Origin: Octopus sinensis
Lineage: Eukaryota
Assembly (NCBI RefSeq): GCF_006345805.1
Contig: NW_021829884.1
Location: forward strand, 1 to 33,086
Direction of reading: 5' to 3'
DNA: 33,086 nucleotides
Both the position numbers and the translations under genes were made by a program. A model generated the notes under the pieces. That model saw only the letters and a program-made list of their open reading frames with translations, was not told where the DNA came from and did no database searches. The stretch's first letter is position 1, and the number at the start of each line of letters is the position of its first letter. Below, piece by piece: positions 8,801 through 29,800 of this stretch.

Positions 8801-11800
8801 CATAGTACTTTCTGTAATATTTAAGTTTGATTTTAGTTTAACATTTGGCTTTATATTATATATTATAATCTTACCAACGTGTTTACTATATCTTTCACAT
8901 AAGCATAATAATAAAAATTTTGGTTTTATTGCAACATTTTTTCTAATGTGTGTGTTAATTGTTTTGAGACTTTATGAAATAGAAATAGTAGAATCTATTA
9001 TTTTTGTTTTATTTCCTATTTTCAAATATATAATACTTTTGATCTTCCTAATATTTTAAAATAGTTTTCAATTTTTAAAATTAAGTCAATATTTCTTAGT
9101 ATGTTACTATAATGATATGATAATGTTTCAGCATGTCTCTTGATTTTTAAGAATCACATTATTTCATATATATGAAAACTGTGGATCAAACTTGTTTATA
9201 ATCTATTAACTGGAAAAGATGTTAATGGTATCTATGCCTTGTAGCAGGGGTTCTTAACAACACAGAAAATAAAAGGCAAATGGTAAAATGTTAAAATATA
9301 GGCAAATGTTAAAGCTACAATTCAGAAATAAGTGAGGGTTTTGAGGGAGATGAAGAGGGGTCACCAATTACAGAAAATGGTGAGTGGCGCTAAGATAGTA
9401 GAATAAGTGAACTAAGGGTATTAGGCGATAATTTTGCATTTATTCCATAAACTTGTCATTTTTTGACCATGTTCTCGGTATGTCTGACAGGTATCGCGCT
9501 CCCTTCAGAGTTACTGACGCACCCCCTGCCCCAGGGGGCGCGCTCCAAGTTAAGAACCACTGATCTCGAGGTAAACAACGTACATGATATAGACACTGAA
9601 TTACACACTAAATTTTATACACTCCCATTCACTCATCCATACACCGAGACAGGTATTTATATATAAACACAGGTATGCATTAAATATGCCTCCTCAAGTG
9701 TCACACTGATATATATATATACCAACTGTCAGAAATGCTACCACACTCACAGTCACAATCATTCGCAAACATCCCTTTAGAGAGAGAGAGAGAGAGAGAG
9801 AGGGGGATACTTTAGATATAGAGGGCTGAGGAGGCTTAAGAGAATGGATTAGAATATATTAAATATTTAGAAACCTATCGGCAATGAAATCCTGTGAACA
9901 AGACTTATAGATTTGCTTACACTGTTAATGAATGATGTTGATGATGATGAGGACGATGTCGAAATTGATGTTGTTGATGATCGATACAGATAACAATGAC
10001 GACACGAAAGTGATCAGGACGATAACAAAAAAATCGCTAATAATAATGGGGGCGAGGAGGAAGAGAAGTAATAGAAGAAGAAGAAGATGGAGCAGAGGAA
10101 GAAGAGGAAAAAGAAGGAGGAGGATGAGAACGATGACAACAACAACAACAAGTAAAGACTATGATGAAGCATTAGTGTATGAATAAAATAGTCTAAATAT
10201 ACAAGCACAAAGAATATTCAAACGATGTTATTTAACGTCGACCTAGATGTATTCATCGTACATAATATACACACCGTATTACAAACACACGTGTTAATAC
10301 GCTGCCATACACTTATTCATACACAGACATTACATATGCATGCACTAAATATTTCTCCTCAAGTATCACACTCGCATATATCCCAAATCTCAGAAATGGG
10401 CCCACACTCACATACACACAGATTGAGAAGCAATAAAATACATCTTTAGAAAGACGGATGTCGGAGCTTAAATGGAAGGATGGGAAAATATTACAGATTT
10501 ACAAGTATATCATCAAGGAAATACTATAAAAGGAAACAGATTCAACTTACAGTTCTGTTAAATTGGACAGATTTTGGAATGTTCCTACTTTTATTTCTTG
10601 GATATTATTATCCTTCAAATTCCTGGAACATAAAATTGAGAAGAAAAGAAATTTAAGTAACCGATTTGACAGAATTTTAAAGAGAATGGCAAATCAATTC
10701 GATGATAGAAGAGATGGAAATCAGATTACGAACGTGAGGAGCTGGTAATGTTTGTGATGATAATGTTAGTGAGGTGGTATTGATAATATGAGTCAGGGAA
10801 GAAAATTTGGTGGTAGTGATGATGAGGAAATTATGATGTTGATGATGGGGGAAACGGTGATGATGTTAATTATTCTAATATTCATGGTGATTGGTATGTT
10901 TCTTCTTCTGATAAGGATGATGTCTGCGGTGGAGTTTCTCTTGGCGATGATGATGAGGATGTTGAAATTTGTTAATAGTGGTGGCGATGAAGATGGTAGT
11001 GTTGGAGACCCTGGATCTGATAGGAGTAATTTGCGAAAATAAATGATATTGATGATGATAAGGGCAATGATGAATTCGGCGATGGTTATTACTGAGGAGG
11101 AAGTGGAAGAGGAAGAAAAGAAGAAGATGGTGGGCGGGGAAGTCAGAGATGAATATAAAGATGAAACAAAGGAGATGAAAATATTATGAGACTTCATAAC
11201 AAGGATCTTATGATGCAGATGATGGGGAGATGATGTTCATTTTCATTCTTATGATAACGATGCGGATTCGCAGATTTTGTTGTGATGGTGGATATGTCTA
11301 GAAGAAGAAGAAGAAGAAGAGAAGAAGAAGAATACAAAGGAGAAGAAGAAGAAGAAGAAGAAGAAAGAAGAAGGAGAAGAAGAAGAAGAAAAAGAAAAAG
11401 AAGGAGAGGTAGAAGAAGAAGAAGAAAGAAGAAGAAGAAGTAGCAGAAGAAAAAGAAGGAGGAGAAGAAGAAGAAGAAAGAAGAAGAGGAAGAAGCAGAA
11501 GAAAAGAAGGAGGAGAAGAAGAAGAAAGAAGAAGAGGAAGAAGGAGGAGATGTAGAAATAGAAGAAGAAGGAGAAGAAGTAGAAGAAGAAGAATAGAAGA
11601 AGAAGAAGAAAGAAGATGATGAAGAAGATGAAGACAAAAGAAAGGAGAAGAAGAAGAAGAGAAAGAAAAAAGAGAAGAAGAAGAAGAAGGAGAAGAAGAA
11701 AGAACATGGAAAAAGAAGAAAGAAGAAGAAGAAGCAGAAGAAAAATAAGGAGGAGAAGAAGAACAAAGAAGAAGAGGAAGAAGGAGGAGGACGAGGAGAA

Positions 11801-26800: not shown

Positions 26801-29800
26801 TGATTGGTATGTTTCTTCTTCTGATGAGGATGATGTCTGCGGTGGAGTTTCTCTTGGCGATGATGATGAGGATGTTGAAATTTGTTAATAGTGGTGGCGA
26901 TGAAGATGGTAGTGTTGGAGACCCTGGATCTGATAGGAGTAATTTGCGAAAATAAATGATATTGATGATGATAAGGGCAATGATGAATTCGGCGATGGTT
27001 ATTACTGAGGAGGAAGTGGAAGAGGAAGAAAAGAAGAAGATGGTGGGCGGGGAAGTCAGAGATGAATATAAAGATGAAACAAAGGAGATGAAAATATTAT
27101 GAGACTTCATAACAAGGATCTTATGATGCAGATGATGGGGAGATGATGTTCATTTTCATTCTTATGATAACGATGCGGATTCGCAGATTTTGTTGTGATG
27201 GTGGATATGTCTAGAAGAAGAAGAAGAAGAAGAAGAAGAATACACAGGAGAAGAAGAAGAAGAAGAAGTAGAAAGAAGAAGGAGAAGGAGAAGAAGAAGA
27301 AGAAGAAGAAAGAAGAAGAAGAAGTAGCAGAAGAAAAAGAAGGAGGAGAAGAAGAAGAAGAAAGAAGAAGAGGAAGAAGCAGAAGAAAAAGAGGAGGAGA
27401 AGAAGAAGAAAGAAGAAGAGGAAGAAGGAGGAGAAGAAGGAGGAGAAGAAGATGAAAGAAGAAGAAGAAGAAGGAGGAGAAGAAGAGGAAGAAGGAGGAG
27501 AAGAAGAAGGAGGAGAGGAAGAAGGAGAAGAAGAAAAAAGAATATGGAGTAGATGAAGAAGGAGAAGAAGAAGAAGAAGAAAGAAGAAGAAGAAGAAGAA
27601 AAGAAAAAAGAACAACAACATCAAACGCAATAAGTAGGAGATAAGTTCAGAAAAGTGCGTATGAAACCTCTGGTGCTAAATACACAAACTGAAGTTTTAT
27701 TCAAGGCAGTTACTCAGCATCGATCTAAAGGTAAACGCCGTACATATTATACACACATGTTAATATAAATATTATACACACATGATAACAAATTCGTCCT
27801 TAGACAGAGACACGTACATGCAATTGATGTTCCCCTTAATTACCACGATCTCATATATCTCCTATCTTCAAAGTGGACCCAGACTCACATTCACAAACAT
27901 CCAAAAACAATAAAATGCATGTATAGAGAGACGGAGGTAGACCTTAAATTGAAGTATGGAAAGACATTACGGATTTAGGAAGATATCTTCAGTGAAATAG
28001 TATAAAAGAAGATTGATTCAACTTACAGAGTTTCTAAACTGGGAAGATTTTGGAAAGTGGTTTCGTTGATTGCTTGGATATGGTTATAACTCAAAAACCT
28101 GGAGAATAAAATTGTGTTAAGAAGACAAGTTATGGTAAGAAAAAGAAAAAGGTGATGAAGAAGAAGTAGATAATGATGATGATGAAGAAGAAGAAGGAGA
28201 AGAAGAAGAAGGAGAAAAGAAGAAGAAGAAGAAGTAGAGGAAGAAAAGAAGAAGAGAAGAAGAAGAAGAAGAAGAAGAAGAAGAAAAGAAGATGATGAAG
28301 AAGAAGACAAAAGAGAAGAAAAAGAAGAAGAAGAAGAAGAAGAAAAAAAAGAAGAAGGAGAGAAGAAGAAGAAGAAGAAGCACAGGAAGAAAAGAAGAAA
28401 GAACAAGAGAAAAGAAGAAAGAAGAGAAGCAGAGAAAAGAAGAGGAGAAAAGAAAAAGACACGAGGAAGAAGGAGGTGAAGAGAGAAGAAAAGGAAGAAG
28501 AGAAGAAGGAGGAGTAAGAAGAAAAAAGAAAAGAGGAGAAGAAGAAGGAAGAGAAGAAGTAGAAGAAAGAAGCAAAGAAAAAAAATAGGAGAGAAGAAGA
28601 AGAAAGAAGAAGAGGAAGAAGGAGGAGGAGGAGGAGAAGATGAAAAACAAGAGGAAGAAGGAGGAGGAGAAGAAGGAGAAGAAGAAGAAAGTAGAAGAAG
28701 AGAAGGAGGAGAAGAAGAAAGTAGAAGAAGAAGAGGAGAAGATAGGAAAAGAGGAGAGGACGAAAAAGGAGAGGAAGAAGGAAAGAGGAAGAAAGAATAT
28801 GGAGTAGATAAGAAGAGAAGAAGAAGAAGAAATGAAGAAGAAGAAGAAGAAGAAAAGGAAGAAGAAGAACAACAACATCAAACGCAATAAGTAGGAGATA
28901 AGTTCAGAAAAGTGCGTTTGAAACCTCTGGTGCTAAATACACAAACTGAAGTGTTATTCAAGGCAGTTACTCAGCATCGATCTAAAGGTAAACGCCGTAC
29001 ATATTATACACACATGTTAATATAAATATTATACACACATGATAACAAATTCGTCCTTAGACAGAGACACGTACATGCAATTGATGTTCCCCTTAATTAC
29101 CACGACCTCATATATCTCCTATCTTAAAAGTAGACCCAGACTCACATTCACAAACATCCAAATACAATAAAATGCATGTATAGAGAGACGGATGTAGACC
29201 TTAAATTGAAGTATGGAAAGACATTACGGATTTAGGAAGATATCTTCAGTGAAATAGTATAAAAGAAGATTGATTCAACTTACAGAGTTTTTAAACTGGA
29301 GAGATTTTGGAAAGTGGTTTCGTTGATTGCTTGGATATGGTTATGACTCAAATACCTGGAGAATAAAATTGTGTTAAGAAGAATATTTATGGTAAGAAAA
29401 AGAAAAAGATAATGAAGAAGAAGTAGATAATGATGATGATGAAGAAGAAGGAGGAGAAGAAGAAGAAGAAGAAGAAGGAGAAGAAGAAAAAGAAGGAGAA
29501 GAAGAAGAAGAAGAAGAAGAAGAAGAAGAAGAAAAAGAAGAAGCAGAAGAAAAAGAAGAAGAAGAAGAAGGAGGAGGAGGCGAGGGAGAAGCGGAAGTTT
29601 TTTCATTGATTGCTTGGATATCGTTTTCAGCCAAATTCCTGGAAATTAAAATTGTGTTAAAAACATTTATGGTAAGAAAGAGAATAAGATAATGAAGAAG
29701 TAGATAATGATGATGATGATGATGAAGAAGGAGCAGAAAAAGAAGAAGGAGAAGAAAAGAAAGAAGAAGAAGAAGAAGAAGAAGAAGAAGGAGGAGGAGG

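Follow-up and report, generated by a model that had tools for sequence, protein, structure and literature searches.

The 33,086-nt window analyzed here, an entire unplaced contig of Octopus sinensis (C6355), carries ten 72-nt exons, each of which encodes one 24-residue leucine-rich repeat (LRR). Between closely related copies of such exons, amino-acid-changing substitutions accumulate on the beta-strand/ascending-loop face of the repeat at four to nine times the rate of neutral proxies, whereas structural codons and introns change very little. The pattern is best explained by positive, diversifying selection that acts on the concave face and favors new ligand specificities, and the window would represent an internal LRR-coding piece of a gene, or of a gene fragment, from a large O. 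sinensis family. Taken together, these two readings appear quite probable to us.

All ten LRR exons lie on the minus strand, which corrects an earlier, sequence-only reading of this DNA; scanning of both strands revealed no LRR exon on the plus strand of the window. The exons are of phase 1-1; a pyrimidine tract and cag precede every one of them, and nine of the ten continue into a gtaagt donor. Each exon opens on the third base of a Leu codon, ends in CT and encodes one repeat of the form L-x-L-x-x-N-x-I-x-x-I-x-x-x-x-F-x-x-L-x-x-L-x-x. Open frame, canonical splice sites and all structural residues are kept in 10/10 exons. Spliced together they encode a 240-aa LRR array (Pfam LRR_8, E = 2.4e-128, nine stretches), whose relatives in the PDB are LRR ectodomains without exception. 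By their sequence the repeats belong to the typical extracellular LRR solenoid class with its tandem 24-residue pattern LxxLxLxxNxI...F..L.

Face codons of duplicate exons

The sequence-only reading had claimed that two pairs of young duplicate exons diverge faster than their introns, and only at codons of the ligand face. Its counts were reproduced exactly. Exons A1 (12705..12776) and A3 (29284..29355) differ at 5/72 nt, read on the minus strand as GAT/TAT (D-Y, x5), GAA/CAT (E-H, x8), GAT/CAT (D-H, x10) and GAA/AAA (E-K, x2), and the adjacent introns (12301-12704 vs. 28880-29283) at 5/404. Exon B1 (10551..10622) and its counterpart B2 (26463..26534) differ at 2/72 nt (N-D at x5 and K-E at x7), their introns (10209-10550 vs. 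26121-26462) at 5/342. All seven exon changes are non-synonymous, a charged or ionisable residue is involved in 6/6 residue changes, and an exon-versus-intron contingency test on the original table yields p = 0.012 (Fisher). A1 and B1, like all window exons, show an open frame and splice sites, and by intron A1 is the closest relative of A3 (5/452). What had been overlooked is a third A-type copy beside the two recognized ones: A2 (28027..28098, minus strand; peptide FLSYNH...P..), to which an identical exon exists at position 33 of another contig, C12325. A2 differs from A1 at 7/72 exon and 12/459 intron sites and from A3 at 5/72 and 10/452.

The earlier intron baseline of 1.3%, although counted correctly, lies on the low side, since the distal block of the same duplication differs at 2.5%. 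Measured against the unique near-exon flanks of both pairs (13/1472) the exons (7/144) still stand out (p = 0.0011). Compared with all aligned non-coding DNA including block 4, which is rich in simple sequence repeats, whole exons differ at 4.9% vs. 2.7% (p = 0.10, not significant); this weakens the contrast, and the case made by the window on its own therefore rests on the face codons. These were defined a priori as positions x2, x3, x5, x7, x8 and x10 of LxxLxLxxNxL. Face-codon bases differ at 7/36, alignable non-repeat non-coding DNA of the duplication at 57/3257 (p = 4e-6), and 0/108 non-face bases of the two exon pairs have changed. If changes were spread evenly, the chance that all seven of them fall within the 36 face bases of 144 would be 6e-5. 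For both window pairs the restriction to face codons accordingly stands as claimed; it does not hold family-wide, where non-face replacements (e.g. T/K at x17, S/P at x23, V/I at x16) accumulate roughly as fast as intron changes.

Genome-wide searches covered the 2.72-Gb, 13,516-contig assembly of O. sinensis. Thirteen further A-type copies were found at 92-100% identity on contigs C27, C12325 and C9503, and more distant cassettes (exons with their flanking intron) on C8, C9, C10, C11063 and others. A partial cassette catalogue was compiled from five regions (140 kb) and 40 cassette loci of 482 nt. From these, 72 intact LRR exons were extracted; the 69 with at least 250 nt of downstream intron were analyzed and grouped by downstream-intron identity into 10 clusters, which are presumed to be young. 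The 11 closest A-type peptides read [DYFN]-[LF]-[SAH]-[EHYFD]-N-[DH]-IQAINE[TK]TFQNL[SP]SL-[EKT]-[TN], and a twelfth (C9503) also differs at x12, x13 and x17. Over the 69 cassettes, the minimum number of mutations per site is 0.32 in face codons, 0.076 in introns and 0.063 in the remaining exon.

The pair test was performed on 19 independent, non-overlapping closest cassette pairs. Intron divergence (K) is 0.028 in these pairs; non-synonymous (dN) and synonymous (dS) divergence are 0.26 and 0.043 in face codons and 0.0245 and 0.071 in all other codons. Face dN is thus nine times intron divergence and four to six times dS, and non-face dN lies at or below the neutral proxies, which is the pattern of a receptor with a diversifying face. 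The excess of face non-synonymous changes is significant against introns (p = 1e-32), against all synonymous sites (p = 1e-7) and against the synonymous sites of the face codons themselves (p = 0.001), and the face rate exceeds the intron rate in 15/16 differing pairs (p = 2.6e-4). When all 100,947 possible sets of six out of 23 codons are ranked by amino-acid differences, the a-priori face set is first and equaled by no other. The sequence-only reading had proposed diversifying selection on the LRR face, and the larger sample bears this out: instead of a dN/dS (omega) of 1 or less, whole exons give 1.25 in the 19 pairs and 1.25-1.5 across analyses.

Site models were run in our own implementation on 10 cluster subtrees of an intron-only tree with site classes shared among them. 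M2a is preferred over M1a (2dlnL = 49.4, p = 2e-11), with omega2 = 5.6 on 18% of codons, or 7.7 with introns as clock. Posterior probabilities reach at least 0.98 for x5, x7, x8 and x3; x2 has 0.2-0.7 and x10 about 0. Five collinear paralogue alignments show 6.0% mismatch in exons vs. 2.3% in non-coding DNA; within the latter, divergence is 1.6% at 1-100 nt from the exon and 2.2-2.5% beyond. The beta-strands of LRR proteins line the concave binding face, and in an AlphaFold2 model of a relative, P0001 (computed with no alignment, predicted local distance difference test score 73; positions mapped to secondary structure only), x3-x8 fall into beta-strands.

Mutation, exchange and the age of the copies

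Without selection, a face excess could stem from a local mutational process such as a hotspot or error-prone repair, or from micro-conversion in which other LRR cassettes serve as templates for the 5' part of the exon. The changes are indeed clustered and include multi-nucleotide changes within codons (GAA/CAT in the window; AAT/GGA elsewhere), and motifs like YLSHN and YLSYN occur in other cassette types. A hotspot, however, should accelerate the synonymous sites of the same codons equally. This is not seen (dS 0.043 vs. dN 0.26 in those codons, p = 0.001), and codon positions 1 and 2 are preferred (27:18:13 changes at positions 1:2:3 in face codons, 9:7:17 in other codons). Also, no donor outside the cassette family itself was found for the YLSHNH or SLGGNK patch in the 2.7-Gb assembly, allowing up to 3 mismatches in 28 nt. 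A-family variants at x5, x8, x10, x2 and x3 form single-step networks, e.g. GAT-TAT-TTT and GAT-AAT at x5 and GAA-GAT-{CAT, TAT, GGT} and TAT-TTT at x8, while x7 variants lie two steps apart. There are 4-6 alleles per codon, and conversion merely shuffles variants and could not make such a number. With no outside donor in the assembly and no acceleration of face synonymous sites, selection accounts for the excess better than a hotspot of mutation does, and a scenario without selection is in our view very unlikely. Localized gene conversion, the alternative named in the sequence-only reading, is unnecessary for the excess on the same grounds and because the codon variants are single-step.

Some exchange between paralogues is nevertheless visible in the sequences. 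The V family shows conflicting site patterns (four-gamete) within exon and flanks, which indicate exchange between copies or recurrent mutation. Exon V (5978..6049, minus strand) and its paralogue at C27:18313607-18313678 (region C27a) differ at 8 nt confined to four face codons (GTT/TCT, TGG/GGG, AAT/GGA, TAT/CAA), and about 770 nt of intron are ~99% identical. Eight changes in four codons, among them the three-step AAT/GGA, next to ~1% intron divergence are hard to reach by stepwise substitution alone and suggest that copies have exchanged sequence, and this is the first of several points that weigh against our interpretation. The second concerns the site models, which assume no recombination; recombination can inflate such tests. 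Third, synonymous divergence in the exons of the 19 pairs (0.064) is 2.3 times that of the adjacent intron (0.028, p = 0.004), so that the proximal intron falls short of a clean neutral clock; either proximal introns are constrained or exons retain older divergence. Fourth, window positions 13294-22450 are ~99% identical to C12325, and some of the apparent paralogues may thus be alleles and the copy structure may be mis-assembled. Finally, no signal/LRRNT, LRRCT, GPS or 7TM exon was found in the window, and the window's own gene may be incomplete or a fragment.

In a rival scenario the duplicates are old. By a kind of concerted evolution, conversion or unequal crossing-over would have homogenized introns and structural codons and selection would have preserved old differences on the face, much as conversion homogenizes the introns of the primate red/green opsins. 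The exon-over-intron contrast would then reflect erased intron divergence, and diversifying or balancing selection would still be required. Several observations fit: the four-gamete conflicts in the V exon and its flanks, the dS above proximal-intron K, the lack of proportion between face and intron divergence (as many as 8 face changes where introns show 2-5 mismatches), the uneven divergence of the window duplication (0.8-1.1% near exons vs. 2.5% distally) and arrays that are mosaic between contigs. Conversion, however, would have to even out the 45 nt that separate the 5' and 3' face codons yet leave 10-20 nt to either side untouched, which calls for many tract ends within a 72-nt exon. Shielding of the face would also predict a peak of divergence beside the exon, which is exactly where divergence is lowest (1.6% vs. 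2.2-2.5%). The flanking 90 nt are moreover conserved across all cassette types genome-wide, and this speaks for constraint rather than conversion. In 66 cassettes genome-wide, ~90 nt of downstream and ~35 nt of upstream intron are as conserved as structural codons (major-allele frequency 0.81-0.88; window examples 12615-12704 and 12777-12811). The downstream stretch begins GTAAGTTGAATCAaTcttctTTTaTAgTATTTCatTGAcGATATaTTtCTAAATctGTAAT, and conservation falls off further from the exon. The cassette unit comprises, family-wide, ~35 nt upstream and 90-250 nt downstream of conserved intron, which might conceivably serve splicing control. No Rfam match was obtained for these flanks or for the window as a whole. 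Both scenarios, fast change in young copies and face codons older than their homogenized surroundings, need selection; the former fits the spatial pattern better because divergence is lowest beside the exons, and we consider the old-duplicate scenario unlikely.

Duplication, relics and copy structure in the window

Both exon pairs belong to a duplication of about 16.6 kb, for which self-BLAST and per-block divergence delimit copy 1 at 7545..13296 (spacer, B1 cassette, (AGA)n, A1 cassette, relic) and copy 2 at 24316..29880 (spacer, B2, A2, A3, relic). The offset between the copies is not constant, owing to indels, the extra A cassette in copy 2 and one exon deleted from copy 1. A2 lies in an internal tandem of copy 2 (27217-28307 vs. 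28463-29568, 90% identical). Divergence is 0.8-1.1% near exons and 2.5% in the distal block (7545-9330 vs. 24316-26128). Imperfect (AAG)n arrays of up to 960 nt flank every A cassette in the window, and the ends of the tandem units coincide with them; Tandem Repeats Finder places the (AGA)n array bounding the A1 cassette at 11300..12262 and further ones at 12815-12986, 27213-27605, 28137-28869 and 29394-29570. On the coding strand this repeat reads (CTT)n just upstream of the acceptor and could be both a recombination substrate and a splicing-regulatory pyrimidine tract. We infer that unequal recombination, with microsatellites or the cassettes themselves as partners, duplicates and deletes single cassettes as well as blocks of several. 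Such recombination would have produced the ~16.6-kb duplication, the extra A2 cassette and the truncated relics, and selection for altered ligand binding would afterwards have driven the new copies apart at six exposed positions.

Three truncated relics are found in the window, all on the minus strand: two of A0 type at 13012..13054 and 29596..29638 and one of A type at 30491..30548. The first runs into a CCT/CTT repeat with its acceptor intact and its donor lost, the second likewise retains the acceptor and has lost its 3' part and donor, and the third, also with an intact acceptor, carries F19 -> S and has no donor. The relics lose 3' part and donor where they run into the CCT/CTT repeat (AAG on the plus strand). 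Two of the three correspond to the 'NLAE.D...EKT' repeat, which in the annotated C12325 gene is the first one to follow LRRNT; the intact counterpart of the relic at 13012..13054 is located at C12325:18580 and represents the first LRR of P0001. A 312-nt tandem repeat (29789-30495, 2.3 copies, 98% identity) adjoins the third relic, with a related stretch at 31321-31603.

The relics, together with a family copy elsewhere that has no acceptor and the missing first and last exons of the window, might suggest that the window exons are decaying, unused copies under relaxed constraint. The copy without acceptor is the fifth V-type cassette (locus L023, C27:17563700-17564400), in which a GT insertion or substitution has destroyed the AG and the exon is otherwise intact; judged from its sequence it is a freshly inactivated cassette. 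Decay, on the other hand, would strike all codons and yield stops and indels. The ten window exons keep their frames, splice sites and structural residues, and non-face dN is below dS, which makes relaxed constraint extremely improbable.

The remaining LRR exons, all on the minus strand with open frame and splice sites, are S (32033..32104; cag-exon-gtaagt), Y (17819..17890), V, D (4806..4877) and one at 2747..2818 with the weaker donor gtcagc. An exon identical to S occurs at C12325:4079 in the annotated P0001 mRNA. Y encodes the same peptide in C12325 and in a chromosome copy on C27 (C27c), being identical at the nucleotide level in the former and carrying one synonymous face-codon change in the latter. 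The window DNA is otherwise AT-rich with many microsatellites and retroelement fragments. Retroelement debris in the introns shows a weak RVT_1 match and repeated open reading frame fragments that are 83-91% identical to one another; it was located at 2-871 (plus strand), 13425-14084, 18058-18530, 1205-1585 vs. 20586-20973 (inverted) and 3451-4191 (minus strand).

Copy structure depends on one assembly in which this contig is unplaced, and the duplicate units could reflect the tandem joining of both haplotypes of a single locus, or their differences could be consensus errors. In favor of such an artefact, the contig is a 33-kb unplaced piece, its two-unit arrangement is not found in C27c (one B and one A cassette), and it overlaps C12325 at 99% identity. 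The overlap comprises 13294-23851 vs. C12325:4992-15630 and 30432-33086 vs. C12325:2444-5134 (97-99% identical, circularly permuted), and compared with C12325 a deletion in the window has removed the S exon from between A1 and Y. C12325 bears a signal/LRRNT exon, cassette number and order differ between array copies, and arrays are mosaic between contigs. Probably the two contigs represent a single, tandemly repeated locus, either as haplotypes or as variants of its assembly. The duplicate units themselves, however, differ by 1-2.5% plus large indels, as opposed to ~0.3% mismatch in the allele-like overlap, and exon variants recur on independent contigs (FLSYNH..P and YLSHN in both the window and C12325). 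Consensus errors would not spare synonymous and structural positions, and the same signal appears in 10 clusters on chromosome-scale contigs. If the copies were alleles after all, the signal would hold as balancing selection. Altogether, an assembly artefact is a distinctly unlikely explanation.

Gene family and comparable systems

Full-length members of the family comprise a signal peptide, LRRNT, many 24-residue LRRs, LRRCT, a Cys-rich module, SEA-like and HormR-like segments, GAIN/GPS and 7TM. The best full-length match to the window LRRs is the 1566-aa O. sinensis protein P0150, which combines a signal peptide, LRRNT, ~21 LRRs, LRRCT, Cys-rich, SEA-like and HormR-like parts with a GPS (1113-1156) and 7tm_2 (1157-1315) in one polypeptide; the window ends before any GPS or 7TM exon. 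The C-terminal part of a second protein, P0010, matches O. vulgaris 'ADGRG6-like', with a SEA-like segment followed by HormR-like, GPS and class-B 7TM. In the genome, A- and V-type arrays on C27 (17.851 -> 17.777 Mb) are followed downstream, on their own strand, by exons for LRRCT, Cys-rich, HormR, GAIN and GPS. There the array at 17.84-17.85 Mb (C27b) holds A and V cassettes that are 95-98% identical over 200- and 360-nt queries, and the exons from LRRCT to GPS follow at 17.818-17.777 Mb. On C9503 (72 -> 158 kb) an array with an A-type cassette (92%) again precedes LRRCT to GPS exons on the same strand, and other members on C27 (17.975 -> 18.068 Mb), C13511 and C10134 show the same arrangement. 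LRRNT exons were found at C12325:26647-26826, which encodes the N-terminus of P0001 (100%), and at C27:18342999-18343175, LRRCT exons at many loci, and at least 66 first exons of the family in the assembly. As LRRCT, GPS and 7TM exons follow the LRR arrays of relatives that carry these cassette types, the family represents an octopus expansion of LRR-bearing adhesion G-protein-coupled receptors (GPCRs).

An LGR-type (rhodopsin-class) GPCR was considered in view of the 72-nt LRR exons and rejected, as the relatives bear GPS and 7tm_2, not 7tm_1. A TLR or a secreted LRR-only protein was dismissed as well; the labels 'LRRC4-like', 'slit-like' and 'SLITRK-like' were given automatically to gene models that are truncated and sit on short contigs. 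C-terminal to the LRRCT of P0010 and P0150 we also noticed a module of ~75 residues and 10 Cys that ends in CCxGxLCNK and is present in more than 100 exon copies genome-wide, many of them on C29. With its CCxxxLCN motif it is presumably similar to Ly6/uPAR three-finger domains; the Cys-rich, LRRCT-linker and SEA-like parts of P0010 have no match in Pfam.

An octopus expansion of lineage-specific, tandemly clustered class-B/adhesion GPCRs with GPS and 7TM ('group 3') was described by Ritschard et al. 2019 (PMC6408891), with an LRR domain in 5/22 sequences, expression in axial nerve cord, suckers, skin and gill, and omega > 1 in branch tests but no positively selected sites (BEB, Bayes empirical Bayes, < 95%). 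The joining of LRRs, GPS and 7tm_2 in P0150 and the collinearity of LRR arrays with GPS/7TM exons agree with that expansion, and the family described here is plausibly the same. Differences are that exon-per-repeat cassettes and the LRR face are undescribed there, that other species were used and that the window is without a GPCR part. The closest structural analogue is the ROCO-LRR family of the brown alga Ectocarpus, in which type I LRR exons of 72 nt (24 aa) encode one LRR each and duplication/shuffling, intronic relics and diversifying selection on the LRRs were reported (Zambounis et al. 2012, PMC3341825). One repeat per symmetric exon, cassette duplication and inactivated relics are shared with the octopus family. 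The Ectocarpus proteins, in contrast, are cytoplasmic ROCO GTPases with exon boundaries elsewhere in the repeat, and their relics also occur on the opposite strand, whereas LRR exons and relics of the octopus window are all on the coding strand.

More distant parallels concern the binding face. Plant R-gene and receptor-like-protein LRRs, like other LRR immune receptors, have a hypervariable xxLxLxx and a non-synonymous excess at exposed beta-strand positions, and they evolve in tandem arrays by unequal crossing-over; they differ by their plant-specific LRR subtype, an LRR block that is usually one exon and signaling via NB-ARC or kinase domains. Lamprey and hagfish variable lymphocyte receptors (VLRs) share the order LRRNT-LRR-LRRCT, the 24-residue repeats and diversity on the concave face, and a VLR-C is among the sequence matches (40% identity). 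VLRs, however, arise by somatic copying of flanking cassettes without splice sites into an incomplete germline gene; every intact octopus cassette has acceptor and donor and lies in exon order and in one orientation, which is not the organization of VLR donors. Signs of somatic assembly were not found, although no search was directed at them. Vertebrate IGFALS, TLR3/TLR13, LRRC15, LRIG1 and LGR4/5 contain the same 24-residue extracellular LRR class (E down to 1e-58), but this is generic repeat similarity without orthology, and their C-terminal modules differ. Paralogous exons that diverge faster than introns, with dN > dS, are known from snake-venom PLA2 and conotoxins; these toxins and the opsins share the exon-over-intron divergence but are not repeat receptors. 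The comparison with immune or allorecognition receptors drawn in the sequence-only reading survives as an analogy, since the family is an LRR-adhesion-GPCR expansion and not a classical immune receptor. Its physiological role may lie in chemotactile, neural or immune recognition.

Cephalopods show lineage-specific expansions of cell-surface recognition genes, among them protocadherins and GPCRs. Hypervariable LRR faces in tandemly arrayed receptors are a known phenomenon. The cephalopod adhesion-GPCR case, resolved to positions and cassettes, appears to be undescribed, as no octopus LRR family with hypervariable faces was found in the literature searched, where only the adhesion-GPCR and Ectocarpus papers bear on the case. 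It provides an animal counterpart of the brown-algal systems with one exon per LRR and, at the level of function, of plant R genes and lamprey VLRs, with a GPCR signaling module attached. Our results locate the selection to six positions per repeat on the concave LRR face, such that variable faces point to ligand sites, and suggest a machinery that supplies the raw material: exon cassettes of one repeat each that are copied between microsatellites. The cassette structure predicts diversity in copy number and splice isoforms, and the results together yield a receptor-ligand hypothesis open to test. Isoforms X1-X3 annotated for the C12325 gene differ by the skipping of single cassettes, so that alternative cassette use may add to the diversity. 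Symmetric, singly skippable cassettes and at least 66 first exons might even allow a regulated choice among cassettes to generate LRR-adhesion-GPCR ectodomains as a combinatorial repertoire, an extension that we regard as speculative and rather improbable. If true, cassette choice would be a cephalopod counterpart of Dscam and clustered-protocadherin diversity on a germline-hypervariable LRR scaffold, and the combinatorial repertoire might serve chemotactile, neural self/non-self or immune recognition.

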